Assembly: GCA_907165135.1 (NCBI GenBank)
Contig: OU015566.1
Span: 7,750,001 to 7,814,000 of the forward strand
Direction of reading: 5' to 3'
From: Oikopleura dioica
Taxonomy: Eukaryota > Animalia > Chordata
DNA length: 64,000 bases
Position numbers and translations under genes: made by a program. Under the pieces are notes generated by a model. It was not told the origin of the DNA. It searched no databases and saw nothing but the letters and a program-made list of their open reading frames with translations. Positions 16,601 through 57,483 of the stretch are shown in pieces. Every line of letters starts with the position of its first letter. Positions within the stretch are counted from its first letter, which is position 1.

Positions 16601-19600
16601 AATGGGCAAAGAGTGTAGTTCCTCAATTGACTGCGAAAGGATGCAGATTCAATCCTGTTCTATGCATTAACGCCTGGCAACGAATCGGTAAGATTTCATT
16701 TATTGAAGAAGAAGTCAAAATGTCTACTAATAGTTTTGGTGCATTTCATAATTTATCGTCAATTATATAATTCAATGAATAATTCTACAATGAGGATCTT
16801 CTTTTCATAAATCATTTTATTTTGATCCTGAGTCAGGATTCGTGATTGATTTAACACAGTTATTTTATGCCCAGGAACAGCTGTTTCCAATTCTTATCAG
16901 ATCTGGAACATGCCAAGTCCTTGCCAGATTAATAGTTCGATTTTCATGGTGTTGATTTTTACTAACTAATTGATAGTTATTAACTTGATTTTTAAATATT
17001 TTCTTGAGCTTATTAAAACATTTACTTTTAGTGACTTTCGACGAGCACGCGAACACGAAGAAAAATCACAAATTCGCGGTCTTCCTTCAGAAGTTTGGGC
17101 AAACAACTGAAGATGAGCTGCTCTCCAACTCTTCCGGAAACGCGTCGTTCCAAGAGTTCCTCTCTTTCCTTGGCGAGGAGACTTCGCTCAAAGATCATTC
17201 TGGGTAAGAAAAAAGCGTGACCCGAATTTGCCATCTTCTAAACCGGAAATATGCTTTCATAAGAGTTCAAAACGAAGAAACAGTGTATTCTAAATTAGGC
17301 TTTCAATTTCACGCTGACCTTAGGAGCTTCGTTTAACGGTTAAGGGACGCCCGAGCAGACTTATTCTCGCCGCAAAGATCAGACCAAAGACTAGAAATTA
17401 CAGTGCGTGGAAAATTGCCGCCCTAGTTGGTGCATGCGCTTCCCAAGCTATTGATCCAACAATTGAACTAGGCAGGCTCTTCCCACGTGGCGTAATAAGG
17501 ATATCGTTATCCAGTTCGGAAAGTGGTCGTTTTCGAGTGAATTTTATTTTTTATGAATAACAAGAAGAAATCCTTAGATATTCCGGTAACCACCAAAAAA
17601 CGCTAGATGTGGCACCGGCAAAATACCTCGCGTATTTAATGATTAATTTTATCAGAAGATTTCGTTTTGACGAAAATCAGTTCTCTCTTTCTTAGAAAAC
17701 TTTTATGGTCTTTGTGAATAGTTAGTTACTCACAGCAGAATCTGATTAATGGTGGCAAGATACTTCATAAGCTTGACTTAGGATATCATTCTTATACAAG
17801 TAATTGATTTATTAAAGATTTTAGATGCTAAAAATGAATTAAACTGCGTTGTTAGCAAATTTCTATCGAAAGATTAAAATTATACACTTCCGATTCTAGC
17901 CACGATCCTATTTCTTGGTTTCACCAAGCCATAATCTTTATCAGATCGACTAGTTATTCACGAAAAACATCTTTGTTGAACCTTTATTTTTGCCAACTCA
18001 GAAAAGCATTTCGAGAAAGCAATCTGGATTTCTTTTCATAAGTCTTAACCCGTTGAGAACATAAGTCTGGCTTCGGCTTAAAAATTTAACATGTGTCGTA
18101 ATATTCGCGTGATTGTGTACGAGTACTCGTATTTTTCCTCCTTGCGTGTCCCAGCAGCCGGGTTAAACCCAGAATTAGCCCACTCAGAATGCTCTGAACC
18201 TTTCTAATGTTTAATTGCGGGGCCTTAACCCGTCCACGCAGCGGTGCCCCGCTAGAATTTCTTAACTCAGCTGTCGTTATTTTCGCTGAACTCGCTGCGC
18301 ACTGTAATTTTTCGCCCATTACTCCACGTCAGGAGTTAAAATTAGAAGATTTTCAAGCGATTCTTATGCAACTTTTGAACTTAAATCTTAACTTAACTTG
18401 TTATATTCAGATTCCGCGGCGGACTTACTCCAGTTACTGATGGCGACAAGACTGTATACACAAAGTTTGACAACAGGAAAAGGGTTGAAAAGACCATGAA
18501 AAAGATAACAATATCCATAGACTTTTTGACGCAAAATGAGTTTTCATGAAAAAATATATCGATGTTAAATAAATTTTAGGCAGAAAAAATTAATTTTAGA
18601 CAAATTTTACGATGAAAAAGAAATTTTTAGGTGATTAATGAAATCTTGATGTTTCCATAAAATATTTTTTCGTCGAATCAGCAAATATTAAATCAGAAAT
18701 ATTAATTTAACACCAATATATCATGTTCTGATTTCTAACTGATTTTTTGTTTTTGGACACGAGTTTTTACAGAAATTAAGCGTGGCAAGTTCTCACGCTT
18801 AGGGTCATTCGTAAAAATGTATCCATCGAAATTTATTTTTGGCACCCCTTAACGAAAAATTCTTGTAGTGCTAAGTGACCTAATCTGCCGACGCTAAGGG
18901 GTTAAACCTTTACTGACATTTTCAAAAATAGTCAACACGCCATTTGTCAGTAACAAATTTCGCGCGTCAAATTTTCTGTCTTCTTACAGTAGCTTACTCA
19001 AAGTTAGAAGGCTCAATTCAAGCGATTAAGCGCGCATCGGGGGATGTTTTTCAATTTTGAGATGATCCGTAGGTTTTAAATTTGTTAGTTTTTAAAGTGA
19101 GTTTTCGCAAGTTTGGAGTTTGTTTGGGTGCGACCTCCGCAAATAGACAAGTCCAAAAACGTGTTGAAATCGGATCAGCTAAATGAGTGTGGGATGACTA
19201 AGTTCGTGGGGACTAGGTTCGTGGGACTAGGTTCGTGGGTGGCTGGCTGGAAAACGTGGTTCGTGGGACTAGGTTCGTGAGTTTTTGATTTTATATGTAA
19301 ATTTTTATTTATAATAATTAAGTGTTATTTATATGTATATATTTATTCATATATATTTATATATATGTATTGTAATTATATGATCATATAATATAATATT
19401 GCTATCTAAATATAGGTTCGGGGTTTTTGATTGGTTAGAATTTTTATTCTATAAGGAAAAATATGTGCGACTAGGTTCGTGGGACTAGGTTCGTGGGTTT
19501 TTAATTGGTAATTATTTTTATTCTATAAGGAGAAATTATGTGCGACTAGGTTCGTGGGACTAGGTTCGTGGGTTTTGAAATTTTTCTTATAAGGAAAAAG

Positions 19601-22600
19601 AGGGTGCGACTAGGTTCGTGGGACTAGGTTCGTGAAGACTAGGTTCGTGAAGACAAGGTTCGTGAAGACTAGGTTCGTGAAGACAAGGTTCGTGGGACTA
19701 GGTTCGTGAAGATTAGGTTCGTGAAGACTAGGTTCGTGAGACTAGGTTCGTGAGACTAGGTTCGTGAGACTAGGTTCGTGGAATTTGGATTTTTATATGT
19801 ATTTTTTTATTTTTTTGTTTGTTATGGTTAGGTTTTAAATAATACAATGGGAGAGCTATACTCTCACCATTTTTTTAAGCATGAAGTAAGGCAACCATTG
19901 TTATTCAGCGCTAACATAGAAATTAAGTTAAAGAGCCTAGCGGCTTATTTGGGGGTGGGGGGTGGGAAAGTCATTTTTTACCATTCAACTTTACCCAATT
20001 TTAAAACTTACGAACCTTGTCCCACGAACCTAGTCGCACCCCATTTTCCCTATATAATAAAAATTTTAAAACCCACGAACCTAGTCCCACGAACCTAGTC
20101 GCACTTCATTGTTCCTTATAAAAAAAAATTTCAAAACCCACGAACCTAGTCCCACGAACCTAGTCGCACTTCATTGTTCCTTATAAAAAAATTTAAAAAC
20201 CCACGAACCTAGTCCCACGAACCTAGTCGCACTCAATTGTTCCCTATAAAAAATTTATAATTTTTATAATACTTATAGAAAAATCTCTAATTTCAAAACC
20301 CACGAACCTAGCACCCCTACGAACCTAGTCCCACGAACCTAGTCGCACCACATTGTTCCTTATAGAAAGGAAACCATACCCCATCTTGCATACTTTGGCA
20401 TAACCACCTACGAACCTAGTCCCACGAACCTAGTCCTTACGAACTTAGTCATCAATCCCCTAAATGAAGTGGCGAGCTTCTACCTGGTACCTACTCCTAC
20501 CAACTCGAGTCTTTGTTTTTGCATAATGCAGAAAGCAGGAATTCTTTTGGGCGTTCCCAGTTTTTATTCCAATCTTTTTGCGTCCGTTTTTTTATTTTTT
20601 CATTTTTCCTTTCTTTTGGCTCTTAGATGTTTTTGTTGTAATGAGATTTGAAGCAAAGCAATTTGAAAATGAATGAATTGAATTTCAACCCTTTTGAAAG
20701 GGAAATTATGTTCCACGTCTCAACTCTTCTCCCTACTGATCCTGACGATAAGCAACAGGTATGATATACAGCAATTTACATAGACAGGCATTACGGGTTA
20801 ATTTTCAAGCCCTAACCCTAACCCCGGAGGTGATCGTAAAATTGGCATAGAAACTAGAATTTCTGGTTGTTGACTCAGAGTCACATTAGTGCACTCAAGA
20901 ATGGACGGTAAAATGGGCTCAGAGTGAGCTGTCCCAGGGTTTTCGTTTCATCCCTTTTCTAATCCGCACATGTTCCGATTGCACAACACGCTCTTCTTGG
21001 AAACTCCCCATTTTACCCTTTCTGAGTTTTTCGATTTATCGAGCAACGGTCAAAAGACAGCCAGTTTTTTATCTTCTAAACTCGCCATTTGGGCCTTAAT
21101 TTCTTAATTGCCAAATGGAGAATTTTCTATTTTAGATCAGATGTTGAATATCTGGACGATGCGTGGCAAAATTCAAAAACTAACCATCGATTATTTCATT
21201 TAACATATTTCCGCGCATCTCTCCCGCCAAATTGATCATAACTCTTCTTTTCCGTACTTTCATGAGAAACAACATTCATGCTTTAGGTGGCCAAAAAGCG
21301 GCATTTGGGAAATGATGTCGTCGCCGTGGTTTTCCAGGAGCGTAATACACCCTTCTGCCCAAGTTTGATGCAGACCAAGGTCACCCACTGCTATGTTGTC
21401 GTTCAGCCCATGGATGTGGATGGACCTACTCAGTACAAGGTAAAAATGAAAACCGTAATCTAATGAAAAGCAATTTGAGACTTGATTTTTTTTCAATTTT
21501 ATGAATTGAAGATAAAATAAAATTTTTCAAAAAAGACCAATTTTCATTAAAAAAACCACATTTGGTTCTGAAATTTGCCCATTCTTGCATTGATAAATTC
21601 TGCGCGCTTAGAGTTTCAGCATTGATCCTCTATTAGGGCTGCTTAATCCGGCTCATCTGCTCTTTTCCGATAACTAGCTAGCCACATTAGACCCCAATCA
21701 CGTTTTCATATTTGCTTTTTTTCTCGCAATCAAGCACTTCTTAAAAAAAAAAACTCCAAAAGTCAAATTCTTTAACGACCTTAAAATTACAAGGTCATTT
21801 TTTATCTTTCTTTTTGGGCCTCAATTTGTCAAGCAGACAGTCCAGTATATGTAATTTCTAATTTGCAATTTCGGTTAGTACAGTTACACAATCTCTTCCT
21901 CCCCTAGAAGCCAAATCACGTGCGGTTAGACGGACGTGTGAACTTCTATTTACAAAGGTGTGTCCATTCTTATCTGCTAGCATTACAGGAGGGAAGCACT
22001 TGCGCCTCCCCACCAACTCTTTAGTTACATAATCAACTCGATCCCAACACCTGCCCAAGAGAGAAGATGATACTGTCGTTTAGTCAACGTTCTATTATTA
22101 AGGACCTTCCTCTCGATATCTTTTAGGCAGTCTTTCAACCCTTCTCTTGGCGTGTGACCGCTTCTTTTCGACCCCTTTTTTGACTCGAAAGCTGGACTTC
22201 AGTTTTGGGAAAATCCTCTTATTAAATTTCTTCCCATAGTCGATAGTATTATTCATTTTTCCGAAAAAATTCAAATCGTAAGAAAATCGTGACTCCTTCT
22301 TTTTCTCATCCCCTCTGAAGAATTCTGTAAATCCATTTTTTCAATGGGAAAAGTTAGGTCTTTGGCGATGAAATAATGGCCGTGTTCTGAAGTGGAAAGT
22401 AACCACGTGCGGACATTCCGACTTCTAATTTCGATTAAATATCGGTCCAAGCAAAGTCGGCAAAAAATGTGTTCAACACGCCGCTAAGATTTTTCGACCT
22501 GATAATCTCATTCGCAGATTAACTTAATTCCAACACATAATCTTAATTTTAAAAAGTCATTTCAGCAAATTTCATTTTTTTTTTCTTCTATTGTAAGCGT

Positions 22601-28652: not shown

Positions 28653-31037
28653 ATGTCCACAGAAGAGAAGCGAGGTTTCGACTTAGTATGGGACCACTTG
28701 CCTCATATTTCTGGCTACCAGCTGAGAATCACTGGTATGGCCGGTTATGCTGCGATTGTAGGCGGTTTAATGGCGATTTATCCGGTTTTCGCTCAGGAAA
28801 TGATTTTAATTTCTTATTTTTTGTCTAAAGTTCATGCTGCACTGAAGCAAATGGCTACTGAATCTTGTCCAAGAAGCTCATGAACAAGTTGACTACTCCC
28901 TTACGACCCCAATCCCTTCAAAACAAGATTTTTTTAATCATTAAAAAGTATAAACCTCCTTATCGTTGTGAAACCTACTTCGACACTGAGCCAAAATTCT
29001 CAAGCCTAACCTGGGACCAAATCAATAACCTAACAGGCCCTTCCGCTGAAAGTTGCCAAGGATGGTCTTCAGATGAAAAAGGCTGTTACTACTGCAAGTT
29101 TGACGAATCTACTGTCGACTCTTGCTGGGAAAAGTTCTATGATTACTTTGATGGCTTGAAGAAATGCCTTGGAGAAGATGCTCAAAAAGAGGGGACATGG
29201 ATGTCGTGCGAGGATGAATTTGCTTTCGACAGGTCGATAAGGAATGTGACAAATTTGGTGTTCGACAAAGGCGATCCTTGGGAATCAGCAGTCACTCAAT
29301 TCAAACTCATTTGCGGAATGGAATGGTTTGACTCTCTTTCTACTGCGATGGGACTGGTTGGTTTGATGATTGGAGCCTTTGTTGCTGGATTGTATACTGA
29401 TAAGTTCGGAAGAAAGAATGCTATTCTGGTTTGGAACTTTATTACGATGGTGTTTTTGATTATTCATGCTTTTATGGAAAGGGTCAATCGCTAAAAATAT
29501 TTCTAATCCTTGTCAGCCAATAATTATTTGTTTGTTTTTTGACCGAATTTCAGCCTGATAAATATGGCTTCCTCGCCCTTCGAGTTCTTGGCAATGGAGC
29601 TCAGCATGTCTCATGGCTCGCGCAAATGACTTATTCGATGGAAGTCCTCGGCCCGACCCGCCGCTCGATTTCTGGAGCAATGACCCACGTTTACTTCTCA
29701 ATTGGGTACATGGCCACTTCTGGTGTGGCTTATTTTCTGCCTGATTGGAGAGGCTTTACTCTCTGCTACGCCGGTATCTGTGCCTTGGCAGTATTGACCA
29801 TTCCGTTTTATCCTGAAAGCCCTTCGTTTTTGTACTCAAGAAATAAGAGCCAAGAAGCTAGGGAGATTCTCAAAGGAATGGCGGATTCGACGAAAGCGGA
29901 ACTACCCGATTCTGTGCTCGACCAAATCGAAGACCAAATGAAGAATTCTGAGAATGAAAATGATTCTGAAGCGGCTGTTGAGTCCTACACAATGCTAGAT
30001 CTGTTCAAGTACCGTAGCACCGCCCTGATAAGCCTAAATATCGGATTGGCATTCACCGCGAACACATTGGTTTATTATGGCCTTTCTTTCAACGTCGACT
30101 CATTGTCGGGAAGTGTTTACGTGAACAACGTGGTGAATGGATTTGTAGAGCTTTTGGCCTATATTGTGGTGATGGGAACTCTCGATAAACTTGGTAAGAT
30201 CTCTGTTTTACGGAGCTCTCTTGATTATTGCCAAATCTTTGGCAGAAAATGATGACCTTCTTATTTTTGGTTGCAATACAAATGATCATTTTTAATTGGA
30301 TGTTAATCAGTGTAAATATTTTTCATTTAATTTTGAATAATCATCGTCTAAAATAGGCTCTCGTCTGTTCAGATAATTTGATTTTTTTTTATAATTTTAA
30401 GAATTTTCTTTTAAAAAAAGCTTATTTTTCAGGTCGAAAAATGGTCTGCGGTGGTCTGATGATTTTTGGCGGAGCTGTCTGCCTCGGTTGTATGGCGCTA
30501 GAAGCCGCAGCTGATTCTGCTGATGACAAAACCGCACTTTTAGAGGCTCAAAGATGGATGGCCTTTGTCGGTAAATTCGCCATCTCTGGATCTTTTTGTG
30601 CTGTTTATGTTTTTGCTGCTGAAGTTTTTCCGACCGTTTTGAGATCTACAGGTTATAAGAAAATAAAGAGAATGATTTTGAACTTGATTTTAGGAATTGG
30701 CTTCGGATCGATGTTTGGTCGAATTGGTGGATTTCTCAGCCCCTTTATTATCCAGATTCCCGCCACCTGGATAATCTACCTCGTGAGTTGTATTTTTCTC
30801 ATTTTTATTGAATGCTTCTTTCAGATTTTTGGAGCATTTGGAATAGTGAGCGGCGCATTGGTATTTTTCCTCCCAGAAACAAACGGAAAACCGACATTGC
30901 AAACGCTCGAGGAAGCTCTAGAATTTTACAAAAATCCAACGGCGAGCAAAACGTATCAAGTGTCCCCTACAAATTCGCAAAGAAATTCAAAGAATGAGAA
31001 AATCTCTGGAGAAGAAGAGGATGAAGCTGATTTTTAG
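28653..31037 (+). CDS. SLC22-family organic cation/anion transporter (MFS)
   Basis: Exons 28653-28796, 28949-29476 (or 29482), 29554-30193, 30433-30651, 30694-30782, 30825-31037. Motifs: large Cys-rich loop, TDKFGRK, MEVLGPTRR, YPESP, LVYYGL, AEVFPTVLRSTG, LPETNGK. Confidence 0.93.
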
Positions 31038-33966: not shown

Positions 33967-36771
33967 TTATTTAGTAGTTGTTTTCTGTCTTTGTCGATCA
34001 GAATGGGTTGATGTCCCGGAGGAAACAGATTTCTTTGCATTTTGAGTTTGAGCTTTTCTTGCTTCTTTTTCCGAGTACGTAAGAGGTGGAGGGTTGGACG
34101 CTCTAGGCTTGCCATTGTTGAGCCGTTTGCCTTCATTTTCAATCTTCTTTATTGCCGCCTCAATATTTTCGTCATCTCTAGGCTCTGATTCTCCCTCTAC
34201 CTCGACCAGAGAATCCACCATCTGTTCTAGAGCTGGATCGACTTTTATCACGGTCTTTTCTGGCACTTCTTCTGCGATTGTTTGAGTTGCGGCTGCTTTT
34301 TCTCTGATGATTGTTTTCTTTCTTTCCTGTGACTTAACCCAGTCGTCAAATGCTTAATTAACTGTAACTGGATTTGATAGAATGCTTGCTTACATGTTGT
34401 GCTGGTCTGCCTGTCAGCCATAAGATTGAAATCACTCGAAGAAGTCACTAAAATATATGTTTATTGGATAAATAAAAAAGATGTGGACAGAGAAATCATT
34501 TTTCTGCATTTTGAGCTTCAGGTTTTTGAGATGGCGGATCAACTTTTGGCTTGTCGATGGTCTTAGATCTTTCAAGCTTTTCATTTTCCGAGTTATCAAT
34601 AGAAATTATAGGTTCCTTTTTTATGGGAGCTCCTTTCGGTGATTCTTTTGGTGTATGTGTGGGGGATTTTTTAGGTGCTTCTTTAGAAGATTCTTCTGGA
34701 GGACTTTTAGGGGATTCTTTAGGGAGAGTTTGGGGAGATTCTTTAGCAGAATGTTTAGGAGACTCTTTAGCGGTTTCTTTGGGACTTTCTATTGGAGCTT
34801 GTTTAGGAGCTTCCTCAGAATTTCCAGTGGAAGCCTTCGGCTCATCAGCATTCGCCTTACCCGGTGGCACCGGCGGGGTAGGAACTGGGGTTGATTCGAC
34901 AGTTGTTTCTTCTTCCTCTTCAGATGGATAGTAGTCCTCTTTTAACGGCTTCTCCTCTCGCTTTTTCTTTTCCTTCGCAACTTGTTTTCTAGCTTTCTCA
35001 CTCGCGATTGCAGCTAAAGGGTCGTATTTACTTCTTCGAAGAGCTTCCATCTTTCTTTGTCGCTCGAAGTGATCGTAGATGTAGTCTTAGAAATAATAAA
35101 AAGCCGGAGTATCTAACCATATAAATTATATGATATAATTTACCAGTTCCTTCCAAGGCTTTGCTATGAACGGGTTCCATTTCGCCATCGATTTTGCTTT
35201 GTGAGCAAATTATGTAAGAAACCTCCTTTTGAAATTCACTGGGATGTTCGACAGTATCAACAGTTGGCTTTTTACCTGAAAAATTGTTTAATATAATAAT
35301 TAATAAATCTCAGCTAACCATTTGCATTTGAAATGATTTTGTAGATCTTCTTCGGTCCTTGATTGTACATGTATTTGATTCCATTAGGATGATTTACTTT
35401 GAGAACTTCTTTGTTTAAAGTCTTGAAGAATTTTTCCATGAGAATATTTATTTTTATCGTTTTTTCTTCGAGGTAAGCATCAACAATTTTTTTATCTCTA
35501 GTTTGGTCGCACCATTGGTAGTAATTCTTTGAATCCTCTGGGTACATTTCAAGTGTAACCTTGTAGACGTTCACAGGATCACTTAAAATTTGATAATCTT
35601 TGTTGATTTCAAAATGATACTTGTTTAAATAGACTGGAAGCAAGATGCTATTTGTCCTTCTTTTGAATTTCCTCGGGTATGAGCCCTGTGGATTCAGTCT
35701 TTTGGTCGTAAACTGCTCAACTTCATCCCTCTTTGCTTTTTCTGCTGCTTCAGCTTTTTCTAATTCTCGGCGTCTTTCTGCATCTTTCTTTTCTTGCAGG
35801 TCTTTTGCATTTGTAAGCTAAAAACAATTTATCTTTATTATAAAAACAATAATCACCTTGATATCTTCTGGCATATCGTAATCAACACACACAACATCAA
35901 GATATGGGGTCACCAATTTTTCTTCTTCCGGGGTAAATTTCATAAATTGGGCTCTGTTTTGAGACTTCAAGCTTGAGAAGTCCCTACTCATTTTTAGCCA
36001 TTTTCGGTGCTTCTTTTTGAACATTTCTTTTCTTTTTTCATGAGCCCAGTGGTGGTATGGCTAAATAATTTCATAGAAAAAGTTTCGGTGAATATCTTAC
36101 AATAAATTCTTCACAAAGCTGCTCGAAACTTGTTACTTCTGTTGGAGGGTCAGTAAGAAGATAAATTGCTGAAAATGTTTTACTGACGACCAACCGTATT
36201 GCTTACTATTGAAATATGGAAGCTCTTTCACAATTTCCTTCAAAATAATTCTCTTGACAGCATCGAGGCCAGTATCTTTTACAATTTCTCCATCAGAGTT
36301 TCGGTATTTCTCCATGGTCAAATATCGTTTCGTATTGTTTATCGCAATAACCTTTCCGTCTCGAATGTCCGCATTATTCAGATAAACTCTTAGACGGATC
36401 TTGTCTTCAGGAACTTTAAGAACTTTGCCAAGCCCACGAGAATGATAAACTAAGACATCGTTGATTTTAGCTAAGAATTTTTCATAAACCTGAAGTATGT
36501 TCATCTTCTTGCAATGGTTCCGGTGTCTTGTTTTTATATTTTTTCAGCGCTTTGTCCCAGGGAGCAATACTTATTTAGGTCTTTTTAATTATACTTATAC
36601 TTGTTTTAAATTATATCAACCTTTCCTTTCAGAAAACGACTCTGAGTTTTCGTAATCTTGGCTGTTCAAGACGCCATAATTGTTGGCAGAGTAGCCACTA
36701 CTCTGGCGACGACCATCTTGGATGGATAAAACCGAGCTCATGTACGAAGAATCGTCTCTACCTGAATGCAT
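33967..36771 (-). CDS. Uncharacterised multi-exon protein with charged coiled-coil segments and ESPK/EAPK repeats
   Basis: Successive minus-strand ORFs (36133-36504, 35818-36024, 35314-35800, 34496-35050, 33967-34330) join via small introns in consistent phase; no recognisable domain. Confidence 0.65.
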
Positions 36772-37902
36772 TTTTGCTAAGTTCCTTGAGCTCTAGACTT
36801 AATCTCTTCTGGGTCTGTATAAACAGACGGAGATTGAGTGCTGGAACTATGGTCAGGCTTTAGTTCTGACAAGTCTGACTGGCGTACTACCCGTTGTCAA
36901 GGAGTTGACGAAGTCCGTTTACCGAGCTAAAAACTATCAGTACACAGATGAATTCTTATCAATGTCACCACAGTACCGGTATCTACTCCGTCTCTAACTG
37001 ATAGCGTATATTTCCACGCATACAAACAGATTCTGTAGGAGCCTAACGATCACAACAACTATCACAAAAACACACATTGACCTGTCAATACAAATTGGAA
37101 TTTTTTTAAACGAATAAGTTCTGAAATCATGGAAGACTAAGCCTGAGTTTTAGAGGAGAGACCTCAGTCATTTATTTAGTTTGAATCTTTTTCAAGGAGA
37201 CTCTTCTCCCAAATTGTGATTTTTATTTATTAAATTGAGTTCTAATTGTATTTATATTTCTATATTATTGGCCACAGCAATTAATTTTTAAAATCTCATT
37301 ATAGTAATGATATTATAACGCGTCAAGAAAACCAAAAGATTTTTCAAAAATATATTACCTGAAAATTAAGATTTTCTCGAAGTTCTCCTTCTGATCTTTT
37401 CTACTGAAAGTTCTGCATGCAACTCAAAGTCGATTAGGCCCAGTATCAATATTTGAAAGTACGCGATAACTTTTATCAGCGTAGAAAGAGCTTTATTGGC
37501 AATAAATTATTGCTTACTTTTCGGTGACAGCTTCAAAATATCGTGAAGGAAATTCGCAGCATAAGTTCGTTTTCTCAAGTTTTTACTAAATCAAATTGGA
37601 AGTAAAGTCATTCACTCAAGTACTGTATGGAATGCTTAGATGTTTGAGCAATCTGCTGATATTCACTTATCTCAGATACTTATTTCCGGAATTTGACATG
37701 ATCTGGAAATTATTAAATCATTCATCAATCGTACAATATTTTTGAAATTTATTTTGCCATTTAATAAAAAAAAACATGGTTGTCTATACAGAAATAAGGG
37801 TGTACAAAAGTGTTATTCTTATCATTCAGAAAATCTTTTCCTCGGACGGAAAAAGCGTCAAAAGCGATATCAAATCTTCATGTTGCGTCGTAGGGATCGT
37901 AC

Positions 37903-39419
37903 TCAGCACTGGCCAAGGGCGCTGAGACTTCCATCGGCGCAACAGTCGATCATGAATGGGTTGTACGTTTTCACCGAGCAGCATTGTTTCGAAGGTCCGG
38001 AGACGAATGGTCGTCTAAATTTGCATTTAAAAAATGATGAAAAAAGTTCGCGCGACCTTTTTCCGGGTAGGCCGCAGCATTGGTCGGGCTCTCCTCCTTC
38101 TTCGTTGGAAATTCGTCTCATCGACAATTTTGGTTTTCCATTGCCTTTTTCATCTTGTCTGTATCTCATAGGACATTCAGCTTCTCTGTCGAAACCAGCC
38201 ATTCGCTTCGAATAAATCGATGAAAAGTCGGCGAGTTGAACTTTCTTTTTTAGGTTCTCTCACTTTTCGCAATATTTTTTTTCAAAAATAATCGAAAATC
38301 TCTACGAGGAAAATTTTCATTTAGGACCCTAGCTTGATAAATTCTCTATCGCATTCGCATGTCGATCGTTGGCAGCTATTTTCTGCATCTCGACAGATCA
38401 TGTCCTGAAATTTAAAATTGAAATCAACGAAGAGAACTTTTGTTGTATTCTTACGTTGTATTCGTCTCCAGGAGCAGAGGTAAATTTGTAGCCATTGTAA
38501 GGATGACATCGTTTAGACTGCTCATGATCGATGTTAATGCATTTCAGGCACTCCTGAAGAGCATGGCATGCCGAGTCTGAATGAAAAATGTTGTTTAGAA
38601 ACACGTGATCGAGGACTAGTCACTCTTGTGGGATCTTGATGGTTTGTTGTTGCCGCAAACCGGATCTGCCCGTAAACAACCGCGGTCACAGATCGTGATT
38701 CAAACAGATGTAAACAAACTGCCCAATAGATGGAAATTGGATCAATCAGCAGCGTTTATTTGTTAATTAAGAGATTTTTGCGTCTAATGCGTTTTTCTGC
38801 TGCCAACAACTTTTTGTCGAATTTGAAAACAAAAGGCTTACCAAGAGGGTCAATTGGTCGTCCAATTCCCGGAGTGAGAATATCTTCCTTGATGTTCAAG
38901 AAGCAATAGCATCCGTACTCGAGCCAGTCACGTGAGCTTCGCTCTGGTTCAGCGTATTTTAAAAGTCGAAGGAGCTGTTTTCCTTTCTTTTTCTTCTGCT
39001 TGTTCATGCGCTAGAAATGTGGATACATGACTTTGATGGGGAATTAAGCTAACCTTTTCTGAGTTTTTGCCGCCGCCTCGACCCCTAACTATGTCAGCTA
39101 GAATCATGTCGATTTCAAGATCCTCTGCGTCGTCAAATTCCAAATCTCCCCTAAAAAGATGCATTTATATTGATTTTTTTCTTAACAAGCCATTTTTATT
39201 ATTAAAATTTATATTTTTGAATCCCTTTCAAATTATTAGAGACAAATTTCTGATTCTTTTTTGAATAATTTTCACTGCTAAAGTTGTTACTTACTCAAAT
39301 TCTGTTTCCTCAATCTCAAAATTTTCTTCCTGAATCTCGTTGATAGATGATCCACTTTCAATCGAAGAAAGTTGCGCGGTAACTGCGGTAGAGGCGAGTA
39401 AAATTGCTGGGAGTCGCAT
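37903..39419 (-). CDS. Secreted phospholipase A2-like protein, probably catalytically inactive
   Basis: Signal peptide MRLPAILLASTAVTA; YGCYC loop; D-S-A-C-H-A-L-Q-E-C in place of D-x-C-C-x-x-H-D-x-C; TCECD; Cys-rich C-terminus. Confidence 0.8.
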
Positions 39420-39700
39420 TTTGGAAGTGTTGTTTCTATCGCTTACGTCCTTTTATCAAGAACGCTAAAAAAGAAGAATCGGGCGTCGGTTGTTTAGCGG
39501 CTGGAGTCTCTTGCTATTTGAGAGTTGCGCGGCGGCGGTGGAGCTTTCTTCAAACAGCGGCGGTAAGGAGCGAGCGCCATTCTGATTAGGAGCAGCTCGG
39601 GGATAAAGTGAAAACGTAATTATGTTCTTTTTTCTAGAAAGGTCGAGGATGAACACCAACTTTTGTTATCCTTCAGTAGTTTTGATCGTCTTCTTCCAAC

Positions 39701-40817
39701 ATGGTGCTCCGGAAGGAATATCGAATTCCGCTGCCTATTTCTCTGGGTACACCCTTAATCCTAGTTGGAAACATATTTTCTTTATAATCAGAAAAGTTTC
39801 TATTTTCTTCTTTGTGATAAATTTTGATCATCTTCTTTTCAGACGAATACAACCGCGCCCAATATTACACCACAATCATCTCCGAAAAAGATTTCGCCAA
39901 GAACGGAGAAGGAATCGAGCGACTTGAAAAGCGCCAAGAAGGCGACAAGGAATATCAAAAGCGCCATTACCACGTGCACTCGCTCATGCCCTCGCCTATT
40001 CAAAAAGTCATCAAGAAGGAACAAAGCATTCTTATAGAAGAAGGTACTGCTAATTAGTAATTACCGTCAAAGTGCCCTGAGAGTACTTAACCTTGTGATT
40101 TGTAAAATAGAAAATCGCTGACGAGTTACGAGTTCCGGTTCCTGTTTAGACAGATAGTTGTCCGCGATCCTAAGGGTATCCCTCTAAAAAGACCTTCTTT
40201 TTTAGGCTGGCTCGAGTGGCCAAACTACGAGACCAAATTCACCAACACTTACATGGGCGAAAACTTCCTGATTGAAATCAAAAGCGTTCACAAAGCTGAT
40301 TTGGGAGAAAGCGAAAATGTTCATGAACTATCTGAAAAAGATTGGAAGGACACGGAAGTTGTGAATATCGATATTGCTGATGCTGACGCGAAGGAATGGG
40401 ATCCAAAGTTGGTCGATATGAAGAAGTTTGGGAGAGTGAATGTCGAAAGGGGATGGATTGGGAAGCTGAAAAATGATTCTCATATGGAAGTTTGGGTTTA
40501 TTTCTAAGTAGGGTTCGAGCTCTACTAGATTCAATAAAAGCAGCTAAATAAACCCAGCAGAAGGATACCCGTATATGACTTGCTACAAATTGGTGACGGT
40601 CAAATTCAAATGGTGGGGACTTGAAACGCTCGTCACGAAATTCGCGCATTACTGGGAGAAAAAGGCGTTTATCACCTTCCACTGTCAGATGATCTGCTGC
40701 ATGGACAAGCACGATAAGTTCCCTGGATGGTTGAATTCCGACATGGAGCAAATTGAGAAGATGGAGGAAGACGAACTCAAAGAAATTACACAAAGGTTGT
40801 CTGCGATTCAAATGTAA
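39701..40817 (+). CDS. Phosphatidylinositol transfer protein (class I PITP-like), divergent
   Basis: Exons 39701-39746 (MVLRKEYRIPLPISL), 39843-40043, 40206-~40490, ~40560-40817 (PYMTCYKLVTVKFKWWGL..FHCQMICCMDK); matches PITP alpha/beta motifs. Confidence 0.9.
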
Positions 40818-41306
40818 TGGTTTGATCTGGAAGATATTATTTAATAAACTTGTTTTATAATAAAACAGACATCTGTCAAATTGCTTGCAACTAAAAAGTG
40901 TTGAACTCTGATAATTAAATTCTAATAGATTGCTACCTCTAAAGAAAGAAATCTGTCGAGCCGGTGCCTCAAATCTCTCCGGGAATCTGCCTTTTTAGAC
41001 CTTTCGTTGAGCCCAAATAAACAATTCAACCACCGAGCTATCGTGAGGCGAAAATTCTACTTGAAGCGTTTTGTCACGCCAAAATCTAATGAATACACCG
41101 CCACTTCCACTTGCAAAGTTCATGATTGTCATTTTAAATTTCGGTGTTCTTTCCTAGGAGAAGTTAACAAGGTTGAGATAAGGTCGACAGCGATGAAATG
41201 AACGCTATGTCGGACTGAAAAAAGCCCGTTCTTGCAGAAAAAATATATTTTGAAGCAAACATTAACATTTGTATTTAATAAATTAAAAAATCAATGTTTG
41301 AAAATT

Positions 41307-43158
41307 TTAGAGGCTACAGTAATCGACAGGACTAACAAAAATTAATGGAAAGTAGTTTTCATATCCTTGTTCATCTGCAATAATGCTCGTAAAGTTTACT
41401 TCTTCATTTCCATCTTCACCCAGTTTTATGAGTTGAATAGGCGATACTTTTTTCATTCTAATTAAATGAGAAATTCCGGGAGAAACAAAAATAGAGCTCT
41501 CCAATTGAATCGCTGATGAATAAGCAATTGCCTTAAAGTAACGAGAAAAGCGAGCGGAAAAAGTTAAAAGCAATTTACTTTTAAAAGGACTCCTTCAGAC
41601 GACCAATTGTTATTCCACAATTTCCAAATTTCGTTGCATATTTCAAATATAAAACCATCCTCTGAGAACGATCCTCCAATCGTCAAAAGACTCCCTGAAG
41701 GCAAACCAATTGTAGAAAAACTGTAGATCCATCTGAAATTGTTGCAATATAACAAGAGTTTTTTTTCGCACCTCGGATGGGGTTTCAAGTATATCCAGCC
41801 TTTTTCTGTCAATGTTTCCACTGCACGATCTCCAGATGATAAGGCTCCTCCGACGGCAGTTGGACGACCTTTATAGAGGCCTAACTCGCCGTATTCGTGT
41901 CCTGCTCTCGTGGAAGATGTTTTCTTTGAACTCAATCCATCAAAAGACTCGCATTTTGAGTTTTTCTCTACGTCGAAACAAATAATTGCTAAACACAGAT
42001 TTTCGATTAAGATTTTAACAAAAACACAAAAAAAAAATTATTTAGATAAACCTATACTACCGCCGGTAAGTGTTAAAGTTGAATGACTGTGCCCATAAAT
42101 AGGGCTCACCATTTGCTTTATATTTCTTCTCCTAAGAGGTACTTTATTTATATTAATGTTGACCCGGCAGCTGCGTGGCGAGCCCTAGGACCATAACTAT
42201 GAAACAATCGTGCTGATAATTCCGTGAATCGGCACCCATCTAACCGTGCTATCTAAAAATTAAATTTATAAAAAAATCTTTATGTTATCTTAACTTTGTA
42301 TTTATCTTCGTCTCCTCCAAATATATGGACCTGACCATTAACAAGTGCGTGTCTTGTTGAGTAAAGATATTTGGAAAGGTAATTGTCGTATTCAAAGGGA
42401 GGTGAAAAGAACGCTTCTTTACTGACGATTCTGCCGTCGAGTAATGCATAATTCTCGCGGGGCAAGGACATTTCAGAACGTAAAACATTGATTTTAAAGC
42501 TTGAAGATGTTGAGTAGATGAAGTTTTTGATTTTCGAGGCGTGATCGAATTTAAAAATACGGATCTTTTTGTTTTTCATTGTCTTGATCAAGTCTTTGCT
42601 CATCTGAATTTCCGATTTCGTTTCGCTATGTTTCTTTTCATTCTTAAATTTTTTGAAAACCAGAGTCAGAAATAAAATCATGAGAATAATTCTAAAAGCG
42701 TGAATCTCAAAAAATTCCTCAACAACTTCAAGAGTAACCGATCCGATCGATTGATTCGACTTCAAATAAAGTACACATTGCTTTAGTTGAGAAGCATCTG
42801 AATTGAAAACGAATGTTTCATCAAAATAAGCAGAGTCCATCCAAATCGAGCTATTTTCGAAAATCCCGAAGTTCATCAAACTTTTCTCATCGTAAAATCT
42901 CAAATCAAGAATTTTCGTTGATTTTGAAGCGCGCAACTGCTCCTCAAAATCGATCTCAAATTGAAATTTTTCTGTCCCATTCAATCTCAGCTCGATAGTT
43001 GAAATATGCTTTAGCTCTTCAAGCGCAGAAAAGTAATTATCCGGAATGATGGTATTGTGATAAAAGCTTGGACGAGGAAATCTCGGCTGTGAGGCTGCAT
43101 TTTTGGCAAAAGCTGGGAAGACATCGTCGTGGAACGCGAAAAAAGGGTTGCTGGTCAC
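41307..43158 (-). CDS. Kelch-like beta-propeller protein of an appendicularian-type expanded family (upstream part of the ORF has a TM segment)
   Basis: HALVNGQVHIFGG, IARLDGCRF, IICFD..KCESFDG, LGLYKGRPTAVGG, LLTIGG, C-terminal PLIFVSPVDYC; exons phase-consistent if 42087-42184 is spliced. Confidence 0.6.
42099..42188. mobile_element. 90-bp hAT-like MITE inside a coding exon
   Basis: TIR TAGGGCTCACCA / TGGCGAGCCCTA (11/12); flanking 8-bp TSD GCCCATAA (42091-42098) / GACCATAA (42189-42196), 7/8. Confidence 0.75.
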
Positions 43159-43207
43159 GTGAATTTTCGTATCTGCCGTTTGCTGAGTAAAAGATAACTC
43201 AGTCCGT

Positions 43208-43612: not shown

Positions 43613-43633
43613 TTACTCTGCTTTTCTCAATTC

Positions 43634-48148: not shown

Positions 48149-48764
48149 TTATGTAAGGCCGAATTCTTCTAAGATCGAACGAGTCACTTCTTGCTCTTGG
48201 TCTTCTTCTTGCATTTGATCTGCTGCTTCTATCGCGTGCAGGACCTTAGGGGGAGAAATATTTCATAACGAAGGGATCGGAGAGTCTACCTTCTTTTTGC
48301 TGGATTCCTGAAGTTGTCCAGCTAGTAAATACTCGTCAATAACAAAGTACGCTTTTTCGAAATTGAAGATGATATCCAACTCGCACACAGATCCAAAATA
48401 CTTGTCCAAAATTTCAACATATCGATGGATTACTTCCAACACCTAAAAATATGTTTCAGAGTTTTTTCTCTTTGGAAACCGACCTCGAGTTCATTTTCGT
48501 CCTGATCGACTCCGCAGCAAAAGTACAGGGATGCATATCTTTTGTACACCACTTTCATGCCCATAAAATCAACGAAATTCGACATTTTTGGCTTTCTTTG
48601 GAGGACTGTGTTCACAATGTCTCTTGATATCTTCTTTCTCTCCTTATCTGAAGAAAAATCTGAAGCTGGAATAAAATCGACGAAGGCGAACCTGGAACGG
48701 AATGAAACCACTTCGTCAGTCGGATCTTCCCCTGCCGGGAGAATAAAATCATAAAATTATACAT
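48149..48764 (-). CDS. AP1S: AP-1 adaptor complex sigma subunit
   Basis: [67 protein letters not shown]; four exons with GT-AG introns. Confidence 0.95.
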
Positions 48765-48922
48765 CTCTAAAAATAAAAAAGAAGATAAATAGAAATTTAA
48801 AAAGAAAGGAGATTGAAAATCGCTGAAGAAAGTTGAATGAAGGAAGACAGGTAAAACATGGATTTTTGAAGAACATCGATGGAAAAAAGACGTTGGAAGC
48901 GGATAAGTGTATGAAAAGAGGA

Positions 48923-49484
48923 TTAAATCATGCCGAGTTCTTTCAAATGCTCGAGCACAGCTCGTTCCTCATCCCAGAGATCGCTTTCATGAAGCTCTCT
49001 GGCGATCTAAATTGCTTGATAATAATCAGTCGGCTGGGTAAATCTTACCTCTTTTTTACTTGATTCTTGTAAATGCCCGGCAAGAATGATTTCGTCGAGA
49101 ATTTGGTAACTTCTTTCAAACTCAAAGATCATGTCTACTTCACAGACTGATCCGAACTGGGAGTCGAGCATTTCGACAAAGAGTCGAATGATATTCAAAG
49201 CATCGAACTCGTTGTCGTCCATGTCGATGCAAAGGGCGAAAAAGAGGGATGCGAACTTTTTGTAGACGATTTTGTATCCTAAATTAGAGTTTCAGTTTTA
49301 CACCAGATTCGGGGCCGACGAAAAAGTTACCGAAAAACTCGACGATGGAGGAATAGCTCTTATCCCTGTTGCAAACTAAATCGACTATCGATTTCGTGAA
49401 TCGCTCCCGATCCACCTCGCAGGAATACCATTTCTGCAGGCGCATTTTCGATTGCTTGTTGAACACCAAAACGGCGTGGAACAT
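48923..49484 (-). CDS. Divergent AP sigma subunit paralogue (sigma1-like), tandem to AP1S
   Basis: MFHAVLVFNKQSKMRLQKWY..GYKIVYKKFASLFF..DDNEFDALNIIRLFVEMLDSQFGSVCEVDMIFEFERSY; three exons. Confidence 0.9.
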
Positions 49485-49565
49485 TCTAGAATAGAGAAAC
49501 CCTTTAGAGGTTGATTTTGCATTGAGAAACAGTTTCAAAGAGCTCCAACAGAGATTCAAAATAGG

Positions 49566-53071: not shown

Positions 53072-53395
53072 TCTTCAAAATTGACAGTTTTTAGTCAAAA
53101 AACAATATTGAAAATTGAAACATGGACTGTATTACAGAAGAACATTTAGTAGTCGGGAAAAAAGGTGAGAAAAAAGAGGCGTGTTGAGTAAGGGCCTGAA
53201 CTGATGATTTTTAAGCAGAGCCGAGTAAATAATTTGATTTCAAATTGAAGATAAAAATGAATATGAATTTTGAACTTCGTTAATAAAAGAGAAAGAGAGG
53301 GAGAGGTTCAGGTGAAGAGGTTTTTCAGGAAGAAGAAGTTCCGGAATCGTTCAAGCTCTGAATCGATCAATTATAAAATCTTGAAATAATGGAAA

Positions 53396-54565
53396 TTAGC
53401 ATACATCGATCAGTTCCCAGAAGCCGTCGGACTTTCGCTTGTATTTTCTGACTTTGTTCTGGAAAATCGTCTCTAATGGCTCAGGATGCTGCATGATCAC
53501 TTTTATGGCTTCTTTGGTGCAGTGCGCGAAATCGGGCTTTTCAACGTTAGGAGATGTAGAGAGGTATTGACGGATGAGCGCATCTTTTCGAAATTATTCA
53601 TGAAAAATGATGATTTTGGAAGATTTACCGGGAAGAAGATAATATTTTTCAGCGTTAGGCCAGGCTTGGTAATCGAAGGGACCAATTTGAAGCTCGTGAT
53701 TTTGGTAGTCGTAGATGTTGAGACAGTCGCCCGTTCCACGGAAAAGTCTGGCAGTGCGGATTGGAATATCTGGGCCTTTGTACATGAACTTGGCTGGAAA
53801 GCTAAATTTAGTGTTTGCGTTGGTGCGCTAGAAAAGCAGAACGAACCAGTAGCCTCCGTGAACTTCTATGGCGACTCCATACAAAATCGGGCGCGGTCGA
53901 TTTGCGAAATATTCAGTGTTCTGGGAGAGGACGCACAAGCTGTTCAAATATATCTGAATTTCGGTTCTTCATTAATTCAATCTTTCAAACTACTTTTTCT
54001 GGTCGTTTTGTGCACGCGCGGAGGATACCTTCGGTAACTTCTAGTGAGCAATCTTCCTCGTCTGCGTACCCTCCGATCACATGAATTTCCAGGCGGCCGA
54101 GGGAGTCGTCTTTTGGATTCGTCAACGCCTGTCAAAGAAATTAAAGTCCAATTTTTCTCAGTATAAGGGTACCTGCGTTGACATGATCATAGATGCAATG
54201 GCTTCATCTGTATTTGACCCGTCTAAATGGCTGAGGCAGACTGCTCGGCTGCCCGTATGCCGCACACAAACGATATTGCAGGTTGTGGCGTTGTCTGTGC
54301 CGATGTACTAAAGGGAATTTTCAATATTTTGATAGACAAAGTATCTCTTTACTTTAGTCATTTCATCTTCCGGCACAGTGGCGGCAAACTCCCGCTGATT
54401 GACATAAAGAACTCCTGGCGCTCCGAGTCGCGTTTCTGGCAGTTTTACAAGCTGCTGCGAGTCTTTGACATATTCAGGGAAGTTTTCGTAAATAAGCTCT
54501 GGATCGACGATTTCTTTTTCTTCAATAAAGCGACATTTCGCTCCTTTTCCCACGCACAAAACCAT
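53396..54565 (-). CDS. NTAN1: Protein N-terminal asparagine amidohydrolase
   Basis: GVLYVNQREFAAT, IGTDNATTCNIV (catalytic Cys), CLSHLDG, GRLEIHVIGG, PILYGVA, GPDIPIRTAR, YLSTSPNVEKPDF. Confidence 0.93.
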
Positions 54566-55242
54566 TAATCTAGAAACAACGAAATCTTTAGTTGCGTGGG
54601 CTTAAAATTTGACAAATCTTATTGGCTGCCTGCTCCGATGTCTCAAGCTTACTGAAGCCTAACTCATCGGATCTAACGGTTTCTTGATAATCTAATAATA
54701 TTAAATGATGCCGAAATTTCCTGCAGGTAGGCGCTTGATGAAAGAATTTTTGAACACTGATTTTGGTTTATTACTTCATATCAATTCATTTTGAAAGTTT
54801 TAAATTTGTGAAAGTCTAATGAAAACAAAGAAGAAAGGGTGAGAAATGCAGAGGAAAATAAATAAATTGCAATAATACTATCGAGCAGTAAATTTTTGAA
54901 CATATAAATTCTAGAGCGAGGATACAAGCATTCTTTGAGGCTGTGACGGTTGACTCAACATTCCATTGTGGCAGTCTTTTTCGGGATTCATTAAATTTAT
55001 GAATATAAATTTAGAATTTCAAATTTTGTTAGTGACCGTTCCACTAGAACGATCCAAATGAAACTAACAGCGGAGCATCACCGAAGATCACAACAGGAAA
55101 AGCTCCCCGCCGAGTGTTTTCTGGTGCCACCAGTTTAAAAGCGGTATTATTTAGGGATCTGCGATGCGCGTTTCCCAAGCACAGATTAACTCTCATTCAA
55201 ATGTATCGAAATCATTTAGAACATTGTACCAAGAAAACCGTA

Positions 55243-57483
55243 TCAATAAAAATAAAGCTTTATCATGAATAGCTCTGGAGATTTTCTGCTCGTAAATGAT
55301 AAATAAAACAGTTGTCTATATTTTGAGATCCTTTCCTTGACATCGTTGAGCAGGGTTTGCCTACTTTTCGTCCAGTCGCATTCTTTTATTCTCCTAATTA
55401 CGATCGGTAGGGAAACTCGATGAAAAATGAGCTTTTTTTAGGGCTTAGTAGGGAGGAAGTATAATACAGTTTTAGAAAGCCCAGGAGCTGGGGATCATTT
55501 TGACTATTGATAGTAAGGGGTTTGACTCATGCCCTGGGGCACTTTTGGCCTTCCAAAGGGCCAAATTTCTGGTACTCTTCGGATAAGGGACCGTAACTTC
55601 TAGTATCCCGGGTCTATGGAAATAAAACTTATACTCGGTTGTAGAGGAGGCTCTGACGGTTCCGAATATGTATAGAAAACCACCGGGACCCCCACCTCTA
55701 GAAGGTGCTAGAGGCTCTAGAAGTTGAGGAAGTCAACCAAAAATCGGTACTTTTTGTCAAAAAAGTGCTGGAAATGCTGTATTTTCATTCGAAATCGATT
55801 AAAATAACATTTTTGATGATTCTGTTAGATTAAAAATAAGTTTTGGGGTAATTTTGGGCTTTTTTAGGTCATCAAAAGCGAAAACTAGAATTTGCTGAAA
55901 ATTCACCTCAAATGACCTCAACTGAAATTTTTGAATATCACAAAATCGCTAGAAATTATTTTTAATCGATTTCGAATGAAAATACAACAATTCCAGCCTT
56001 TTTTAGGCAAAAAGTACCGATTTTTGGTTGACTTCCTCAACTTCTAGAGCCTCTAGCACCTTCTAGAGGTGGGGGTCCCGGTGGTTTTCTATACATATTC
56101 GGAACCGTCAGAGCCTCCTCTACAACCGAGTATAAGTTTTATTTCCATAGACCCGGGATACTAGAAGTTACGGTCCCTTATCCGAAGAGTACCAGAAATT
56201 TGGCCCTTTGGAAGGCCAAAAGTGCCCCAGGGCATGAGTCAAACCCCTTACTATCAATAGTCAAAATGATCCCCAGCTCCTGGGCTTTCTAAAACTGTAT
56301 TATACTTCCTCCCTACTAAGCCCTAAAAAAAGCTCATTTTTCATCGAGTTTCCCTAACGATCGGCATTACTTTTCCGACGGATTTCGCGTTGATCAGCAT
56401 TTGTTTCGTAACATTCGCCACGTTCACTTCTTCATTTTCTTTCCAACTTTTTCCGTGGTCCAAATTTTTATCAGCAATGGAAAGTTACGGTTAGTAAATA
56501 ACTATTCTCCGGCTACATTTCAAAAAAATAATTCAATTTTCATTTCTCAAAAGACAATCTGACTGGTTCGATCGCGCGGGCGCCCAATTAGCGCAAGCAT
56601 CGATTTCGCCATATGAAAATTCTCTTTCTAAGCCATTATGGTCTTTTTCGCGAGAAAGTAAAAACTAACGATAAACTGTAATTTGAACCCTGTCAATCAT
56701 AATCGGTCACCATTGCCATCGATGCATACTGCATTCCCATTTCTCGAGCAATTGACGCTAGAATTGCCCTTTTTATAACAGTTTTTCACGAAAACTACCT
56801 TCAGGACACGTTGTCATATTGACAATTTCTGCGTTGTAAACATTTCTAAAAACGCAAGATTCCGCAAAAGTCGAGAATCTGGGTCCTTCGATGCAAACTG
56901 TCGTTCCTCTCGTTTTGTGTTCAACCCCACTTTCGCGAAGAGACTCTATCAGAATCTCTCGTAAATCTTCATCGAATGCTGGTTTTGACGGCAGATGAAT
57001 AATTCTAAAAAACTTATAATACTCTAATATTTATCGTCTCTTTCTTACCCTCTGGGTCCTCCATTTTCGATGGCAGTTCCAACATGCGTATTCAACCTGT
57101 AACCCTTGGTCATGTCAATATAGTCTGATAAGACTACCAAATCGCCCGGCCTGTACTCCTCCTTCAAGCTTCCACAAGCTGTAGTCGCTACAATGTGCGT
57201 CACCCCGAGCCGCTTCAGTGCCCACAAGTTCGCACAATAATTCACTAAAATAGAACTTGATAAAATCCCACAAAACTATCTTACCTTGGCTGGGAGACTT
57301 GTTGTGCAATCTGCCATGTCTGGAGAGAATGAAGACCGTCTCTCCATTGACTTCTCCTTTAAAAATGGTCGAAGGGTGTCCCCAAGGCGTATTCTCTATG
57401 TTTTCTAGCTCTTCTCTGTTCGCCACGATCGTAGGGTCATCTAACCCTGTTCCGCCAATAATCGCTATCACTACTGTACTCAT
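55243..57483 (-). CDS. MTAP: 5'-methylthioadenosine phosphorylase, with a MITE inserted in a 3' coding exon (3' end approximate)
   Basis: [54 protein letters not shown](C)WKE; the C-terminal helix ([12 protein letters not shown]) lies on the far side of the 55408-56356 insertion. Confidence 0.92.
55408..56356. mobile_element. 949-bp hAT-like MITE with ~349-bp perfect TIRs and 8-bp TSD
   Basis: TSD ACGATCGG at 55400-55407 and 56357-56364; termini TAGGGAAACTCG / CGAGTTTCCCTA; arms 55408-55756 and 56008-56356 appear to be exact reverse complements, extending ~50 bp further with mismatches; no ORF. Confidence 0.95.

Follow-up and report, generated by a model that had tools for sequence, protein, structure and literature searches.

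GA-AG, GG-AG and GC-AG introns make up 11-12% of the introns of Oikopleura dioica and are enriched among new intron gains; reverse splicing and a permissive spliceosome have been put forward as ideas about their origin (Denoeud et al., 2010, via PMC4122922; PMC7072748; PMC8008620). No description of complementarity between the two ends of O. dioica introns was found in the literature searched. Here we report such complementarity in a stretch of 64,000 nucleotides of O. dioica DNA (contig OU015566.1, positions 7,750,001 to 7,814,000 of the forward strand; hereafter the window), whose non-GT introns are members of this known class and carry inverted repeats close to both ends. We favour the view that these repeats are probably a conserved terminal stem that brings weak splice sites together.

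Transposon-derived non-canonical introns, or introners, have been described in the larvacean Fritillaria borealis (Henriet et al., 2019, via PMC11282704; bioRxiv 10.1101/2025.08.15.670264). The two systems are alike in several respects: both organisms belong to the same animal class and have lost the minor spliceosome, both have non-GT introns with inverted repeats at the ends and at lineage-specific positions, and the same logic has been proposed, that splicing neutralises gene-disrupting insertions. In Fritillaria, splicing takes place at the very ends of the terminal inverted repeats (AG-AC, AG-AT), a TAC sequence is duplicated, and the elements form multi-copy families of miniature inverted-repeat transposable elements (MITEs), whereas the Oikopleura introns have G*-AG borders except in one case (GA..AA or AC..AG), an inset repeat and compensatory change between the arms, and show no duplication. 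With regard to the features that define introners, an inverted repeat at or near both splice sites was found in 5/5 non-GT introns of the window, and a lineage-specific position in those of MTAP and SLC22b, the second SLC22 intron.

The nonconventional introns of euglenids offer another comparison, since they too combine variable non-GT-AG borders with a short helix inside the ends (+4..+6 with -8..-6 in euglenids); they have duplication-like border repeats and a suspected MITE origin (PMC11282704; PMC12501133). The registers differ, however, and the Oikopleura stems are longer (6-14 bp across the non-GT introns and their counterparts in relatives), while in euglenids the nonconventional introns leave the transcript only once the conventional ones are gone, are excised as circles, and probably do not depend on the spliceosome (PMC11282704; PMC12501133). 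Other introners obtain a splice site by co-opting their target-site duplication (Huff et al., 2016, via PMC13326754; Gozashti et al., 2022, via PMC11282704). Theirs is the scheme that a preliminary description of the window had adopted, in which one splice site comes from the element and the other from the duplication, and excision is exact. Four of the five introns concerned lack the duplication signature that such introners require, and in the fifth it is ambiguous.

Pairing of intron ends

Homology or a cDNA-like contig guided the intron models, and pairing was not a criterion for selecting the introns. The set comprised all resolvable junctions of Rap1GAP, MTAP, SLC22, both AP-sigma genes and P4H, together with those parts of PP5 and PITP that could be resolved and individual clear introns in other places. 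An automatic gene finder that chains open reading frames (ORFs) was noisy, antisense ORFs scoring as well, and was used for proposals only; each was inspected by eye, and what it had called "non-canonical" in AP-sigma, sPLA2 and PP5 proved to be GT-AG. The modelled genes contained 37 GT-AG introns and five non-GT introns. The latter, with SLC22a and SLC22b standing for introns 1 and 2 of SLC22, are listed below with their arms.

18477..20700, + strand: GA-AG intron of Rap1GAP, 2224 nt, placed by homology (KFDNR/EIMFHVS) and by a relative's intron-less contig (L058)
18478..18490, + strand: 5' arm of the Rap1GAP intron, AAAAGGGTTGAAA, 13/13 complementary to 20683-20695
20683..20695, + strand: 3' arm of the Rap1GAP intron, TTTCAACCCTTTT, pairing with the 5' arm and followed by GAAAG and the splice site
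28797..28948, + strand: SLC22a, GA-AG, with arms AATGATT (28799-28805) and AATCATT (28936-28942) pairing 7/7 and overhangs of 2+6
29477..29553, + strand: SLC22b, GA-AG, with arms GGTCAA (29482-29487) and TTGACC (29539-29544) forming 6 contiguous pairs
40494..40557, + strand: GG-AG intron of PITP, 64 nt, with arms GGGTTTATTT (40494-40503) and AAATAAACCC (40546-40555), then AG
56447..56694, - strand: intron 4 of MTAP, GA..AA or AC..AG, with arms CAGGGTTCAAAT (56692-56681) and ATTTGGACCACG (56465-56454)

Strong terminal pairing, defined by a cut-off set post hoc as a run of at least 6 pairs or a terminal duplex at or below -10 kcal/mol, was present in 5/5 non-GT introns and in 1/37 GT-AG introns (Fisher p=7e-6), and the sole GT-AG intron that paired did so through an A7:T7 run of poly-A/T. 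The absence of such pairing that the preliminary description had seen in about eight GT-AG introns extends to 36 of 37. Duplex energy also distinguished the two classes (Mann-Whitney p=5.5e-4), with a median of -10.0 kcal/mol in seven non-GT candidates versus -3.2 in 22 GT-AG introns. The G+C fraction of the intron ends was similar in the two (0.29 and 0.32). The terminal duplexes of Rap1GAP (-17.7 kcal/mol) and MTAP (-12.0 kcal/mol) were matched by no shuffle; that of PITP reached -13.3 kcal/mol, with a fold z-score of -5.1. All the non-GT introns and orthologues subjected to folding had minimum-energy structures closed by the terminal stem.

Between the repeats and the intron ends lie 0-2 nt on the 5' side and 2-7 nt on the 3' side. 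A fixed 2+6 register, in which two unpaired bases lie at the 5' end and six at the 3' end, had been proposed for all of them, and this did not hold, since the overhangs are 1+5 in Rap1GAP, 1+6 in the Rap1GAP intron of a relative, 2+6 in SLC22a and 0+2 in PITP. In Rap1GAP the pairing that had been claimed (12/12) is in fact longer, a perfect repeat of 13 bp between +2..+14 and -6..-18, and it was the register that failed. The SLC22 claims, 7/7 pairs at 2+6 in the first intron and 6 contiguous pairs in the second, are in the sequence as described and lie on the same diagonal; the best diagonal, taken as 3' overhang minus 5' overhang, is 4 in all five introns that had been put forward. One of those five was not an intron that we could accept:

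36570..36625, - strand: candidate "orphan" GA-AG intron of the preliminary description, which joins no continuous reading frame

Its ends had been credited with 10/15 pairs, and only 4-5 contiguous bases pair. The candidate may lie 5' of an ATG at 36504, to judge from the reading frames, and a 4-nt indel inside it in a relative's DNA contig (run X29) fits non-coding sequence.

It is very improbable that the pairing arose by chance and was then selected by a reader who, scanning purine-rich donors and AT-rich 3' ends, picked introns and boundaries that happen to pair. Such a reader might be recognised in the weakness of the orphan candidate, in the AT-rich 7-bp match of SLC22a, in the alternative boundary of SLC22b, and in MTAP coordinates that were off by an AG/AA ambiguity. 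In random GA...AG segments of the window, however, a run of at least 6 on one diagonal occurs in 0.3% (at least 5 in 0.9%), which is the background per intron, and the PITP intron, absent from the preliminary list, has a perfect terminal repeat of 10 bp. Moreover, all modelled non-GT introns pair and the GT-AG introns, but for one, do not, and relatives' independent contigs show the pairing as well. We regard the specificity of pairing for non-GT introns in this window as a strong lead and not as proof, because of the post hoc cut-off and the small sample.

Paired introns in wild relatives

Marine metagenome contigs from wild relatives are 77-93% identical to the window, and two of them bear directly on the Rap1GAP intron. 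The first (L058; Ga0314683_10009527) is cDNA-like and carries a relative's Rap1GAP exons joined without introns, and the second (L122) is an intron-bearing genomic contig whose exons are 97-100% identical to those of the first. On the window, the intron-less contig resolves 11 Rap1GAP junctions, 10 of them GT-AG and one GA-AG, while a 12th is ambiguous. It joins GACAACAG/GGAAATTATG (the latter starting GGAAATT), which is the GA-AG junction, and the cryptic GT of the Rap1GAP 5' arm is not the cleavage site. A GT-AG solution that keeps the frame was sought in Rap1GAP and none was found. Rap1GAP thus contains a G*-AG intron that is removed at GA-AG in the relative, and the possibility, raised in the preliminary description, that such junctions would prove to use other, canonical sites did not materialise here. 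Bulk RNA-seq was less informative: in three species-labelled runs of 2026 (X5-X7), 77, 22 and 14 reads mapped to 36460-42450, mostly partially, with zero junction evidence, and these reads are mostly 90-95% alike to the window, indicating a different cryptic lineage. Pairs of intron-less and genomic contigs in public metagenomes can supply splice evidence where RNA runs fail.

The orthologous intron of the genomic contig is 685 nt long versus 2224 nt in the window. Its ends read G/AAAAGGTTGAAAAT...ATTTTCAACCTTTT/GAACAG and form a perfect 14-bp stem. Compared with the window, the relative's intron has lost one G of the 5' arm and one C of the 3' arm in concert, so that GGG:CCC became GG:CC and pairing was kept. 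With gaps allowed, the ends are identical at 14/16 and 17/18 positions, compared with 9-10/16 and 10-14/18 in the two flanking GT-AG introns, while the intron middles are 55-63% identical, no better than the neighbouring GT-AG introns. Inside the window's Rap1GAP intron lies a nested element at 19167-20454, made of inverted arrays of a 13-15-nt unit, GACTAGGTTCGTG, and absent from the relative's 685-nt intron; this could be a non-autonomous transposon whose repeats are subterminal. Hairpin elements also occur in the 7.2-kb intron 1 of Rap1GAP, at 3652-3814 (48-nt arms, 92% complementary) and 6856-7100 (54-nt arms, 80%).

The SLC22a junction keeps the F-x4-P-x3-C spacing of OCT proteins, with human OCT1 as the comparison. 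Its arms, AATGAT(T)/(A)ATCATT, are kept in three relatives (L001-L003) while the interiors diverge in length and sequence, and in each of these lineages the minimum-energy fold is closed by the stem. The close relatives examined have the Rap1GAP and SLC22 introns too. The position of SLC22b is supported by a paralogue (P0004) that lacks the intron and reads AFMPNQYGF across the site. In two relatives (L002 and L003) the ends of SLC22b pair perfectly over 10 bp, AAAGGGTCAA with TTGACCCTTT, and TGAAG comes next (a further contig, L004, fell outside the alignment), and the more distant L001 retains 10/12 pairs, with a double change at +10 from A:T to T:A. Relative to L002 and L003, the window's SLC22b shows 5 changes in the last 12 nt (29539-29553), which break the stem and make a canonical-looking TTTCAG acceptor. 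Together with the in-frame GT 6 nt downstream of the donor, this could mean that SLC22b in the window is switching toward GT-AG splicing. Taken together, the alignments with relatives show arms that are kept while interiors cannot be aligned, and both arms changed together in two introns.

The terminal repeat of PITP is a perfect 10 bp, and no GT-AG solution in frame was found for this intron. On homology, SLC22a, SLC22b and PITP fit G*-AG borders. In MTAP the mRNA must join DYD/CWKENEE, and two relatives (P0094 and P0096; locus L005) have ITDYDCWKENEEV in one continuous ORF; since the ORF is uninterrupted there, MTAP intron 4 is lineage-specific. A shared G leaves a 1-nt ambiguity, and its borders are therefore GA..AA or AC..AG, neither of them G*-AG. 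The GA-donor intron with 10/13 pairs that had been described here retains its pairing (9/12) and loses its borders, which as drawn end in AA. A canonical GT donor in the MTAP 5' arm was rejected, as the reading runs into a stop. A perfect TACTAAC lies about 45 nt upstream of the 3' end of this intron.

The sequence context of the arms raises the question of splice signals. Inside the 5' arm, 2-7 nt past the donor, there is a cryptic GT at 18484 in Rap1GAP, 29483 in SLC22b, 56688 in MTAP and 40496 in PITP, while SLC22a has none; 4/5 non-GT introns have an A- or purine-rich 3' end (GAAAG, AAAAAG) without a pyrimidine tract by the AG, and 4/5 have the published AG/GA+A flank in whole or in part. 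The complementarity might then be a by-product of splice signals, a U1-type AGG/GT facing a branch-point-like motif (TCAAC, TTGAC, TGGAC) at a near-fixed distance from the AG, and pairing as such would have no function. The cryptic GT, found in the orphan candidate as well as in the four introns just named, agrees with this, as do 3' arms that resemble the yUnAy branch-point consensus at a similar distance to the AG and arms that are conserved in sequence beyond pairing alone; the 5' splice-site and branch-site consensus sequences are, besides, partly complementary. We nevertheless judge this explanation unlikely. The arms differ by intron (AATGATT, GGGTTTATTT, AAAGGGTCAA) and yet each matches its own partner, the SLC22a arms lack both the cryptic GT and any branch-like motif, perfect matches of 13-14 bp far exceed a consensus of 5-6 nt, both sides changed together, and the GT-AG introns are without such complementarity.

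hAT-type elements and the origin of the repeats

Another account of the repeats, that of the preliminary description, is that a hAT MITE inserted at NNNNNN/GN and that splicing takes out the final 2 nt of the left-hand 8-bp duplication, the element and the initial 6 nt of the right-hand one in a fixed 2+6 register, restoring the exon. It has in its favour that real hAT-type MITEs with 8-bp duplications do lie in coding exons of the window, as had been claimed for two "fresh precursors":

55408..56356, strand not assigned: young hAT-type MITE of 949 bp in the last MTAP coding exon, with duplications at 55400-55407 and 56357-56364
42099..42188, - strand: TAGGG-ended MITE of 90 bp inside a conserved kelch-like coding exon, with duplication TTATGG(T/G)C and termini TAGGGCTC

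Both are hAT MITEs by their 8-bp duplications, TAGGG termini and inverted repeats. The larger has a perfect duplication, ACGATCGG, TAGGG ends with termini TAGGGAAAC, and 410-nt arms that are 98% complementary. Excising it plus one duplication restores the C-terminal reading frame of MTAP, and the restored frame presumably resembles the human MTAP C-terminus. The kelch element is also found in L007 and L009 (92.6% identity) and in X29, where 38 internal nt correspond to 138 nt, and its divergence is about 11% versus 0-5% in the flanking exons. Because it is common to relatives and evolves faster than the exons around it, the kelch MITE is very probably spliced out. It allows several in-frame removals, including GG-AG at 42184-42087 and GT-AG at 42163-42087; the claim that it is removed exactly as GG-AG was rejected in view of these many solutions. 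At the predicted GG-AG donor a substitution from CCT to CCC would be synonymous. A search for the kelch-like protein gave fragments only.

The arms of the non-GT introns give the insertion model some further support, as AAGGG or CAGGG recalls hAT termini. Across the introns they read AAAAGGG, CAGGG, AAGGG and AAGG, with AATGATT in SLC22a and GGGTTT in PITP, a loose likeness to the hAT consensus (T/C)A(A/G)NG in which the start of the "terminus" is arbitrary. Rap1GAP and SLC22b (as in L002) have the end motifs GAAA(A)GGGT and ACCCTTTTGAA(A)G in common, which hints at relatedness. Within the window, the only sequence searched for this, no second copy of the putative elements was found; with up to 3 mismatches, the 5' arm motif was in mild excess (63 observed versus 42 expected), and the 3' arm motif was not enriched (35 observed versus 42 expected).

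The remainder of the evidence goes the other way, and we think it improbable that the introns arose in this manner. The model was tested by comparing the last 6 exon and first 2 intron bases with the last 6 intron and first 2 next-exon bases. In the five introns, matches counted by hand without gaps came to 4/8, 2/8, 3/8, 4/8 and 4/8, nearly all of them the AG/G consensus, so that the proposed 8-bp duplication has left no remnant past AG/G. Duplications of 8, 2, 3, 6, 7 or 9 bp were sought in the flanks and none was found beyond the splice consensus except at the relative's Rap1GAP repeat (L122). There, CAACAGG and GAACAGG flank the repeat, which could be counted for the model; the match is ambiguous, being 7 bp long and not 8, with 6/7 bases matched and four of them splice consensus. 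GAAAAGGG and GAAAGGG were also considered as a Rap1GAP duplication and rejected, as the implied empty site shifts the reading frame. Immediate exact splicing after insertion, another part of the model, does not agree with the downstream exons of SLC22a, SLC22b and the orphan candidate, which begin TA, CC and TA, leaving the inserted copy without its initial G. At the MTAP insertion point, comparison of the intron-less relative's protein with the window flanks revealed no duplicated bases. Recent intron gain, which had also been proposed, would fit the MTAP intron missing in a relative and SLC22b missing in a paralogue. In addition, the overhangs vary, concerted arm change is unexpected for decaying transposon ends, and the two genuine MITEs themselves misfit the 2+6 scheme, under which the intron made from the 949-bp element, with its duplication ACGATCGG, would end in TC, while the predicted kelch intron has overhangs of 0+16. 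Not every terminal repeat should be taken for a fresh hAT insertion, since here the duplication signature is missing.

The window as a whole has 39% G+C and is dense in genes, and its introns are very short. The genes to which the text refers are placed as follows.

3273-26084, + strand: Rap1GAP
28654-31035, + strand: SLC22/OCT-like transporter
~39842-40816, + strand: PITP
48150-49480, - strand: two AP-complex sigma-subunit paralogues in tandem
57482-55250, - strand: MTAP

Other genes placed in the window are secreted-phospholipase-like, kelch-like, LRR, PP5 and prolyl-hydroxylase-like. The introns of the tandem AP-sigma genes are all GT-AG, and one of them measures a mere 32 nt.

A probable helix closing introns with weak splice sites

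In the reading that we favour, and consider probable, a conserved terminal stem in non-GT introns brings weak splice sites together. The two arms would pair in the pre-mRNA and form a helix that closes the intron; this helix would set a weak donor (GA or GG) beside a weak, purine-rich acceptor and help to define or juxtapose the splice sites, and it may mask the cryptic GT within the 5' arm. The arms are conserved and change in concert, and the stem has decayed where a canonical alternative arose; all of this fits selection on pairing. That pairing of the ends may aid weak splice sites had been suggested in the preliminary description, and arm conservation and compensatory changes in relatives fit that suggestion. 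The repeats themselves might once have been terminal inverted repeats, carried by small mobile elements that turned into introns, as in Fritillaria, an origin that is plausible.

Several points weigh against this reading. Only five non-GT introns were available, 3 or 4 of them from a reader seeking pairing, the junctions of four of the five have homology as their basis, and the threshold for strong pairing was chosen after the fact. The SLC22a stem is AT-rich and weak (-5.4 kcal/mol, shuffle p=0.04), and that of SLC22b has decayed to 6 bp in the window, where an in-frame GT-AG alternative starts at 29483, 6 nt downstream. For PITP, one relative (L010) has CC in place of the acceptor AG and no in-frame G*-AG solution, and in another (L011) a GT-AG alternative is present. 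For introns shorter than about 60 nt, whole-intron folding could not tell the classes apart, since in a 40-nt intron the ends are paired by any hairpin. There are only two compensatory events, one of them an indel in a homopolymer run. Finally, a stem over +2..+14 could compete with U1 and U6 at the 5' splice site.

A broader proposal goes beyond the probable role of the stem and is offered tentatively, as possible but doubtful: that O. dioica has a class of structure-defined introns, in which the helix at the ends, and not GT/AG plus a pyrimidine tract, marks the intron, the helices being domesticated transposon ends kept by selection. If true, such a class would tolerate borders like the GA..AA or AC..AG of MTAP, would account for the freedom of the second donor base to vary, and would be an animal counterpart of the nonconventional introns of euglenids. 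How the non-GT introns of O. dioica, about one in nine, are recognised, and why they abound among new gains, has been a question since 2010. If pairing holds genome-wide, it would provide a testable sequence rule for these introns and would link the G*-AG introns of Oikopleura to the transposon-derived introns of Fritillaria.

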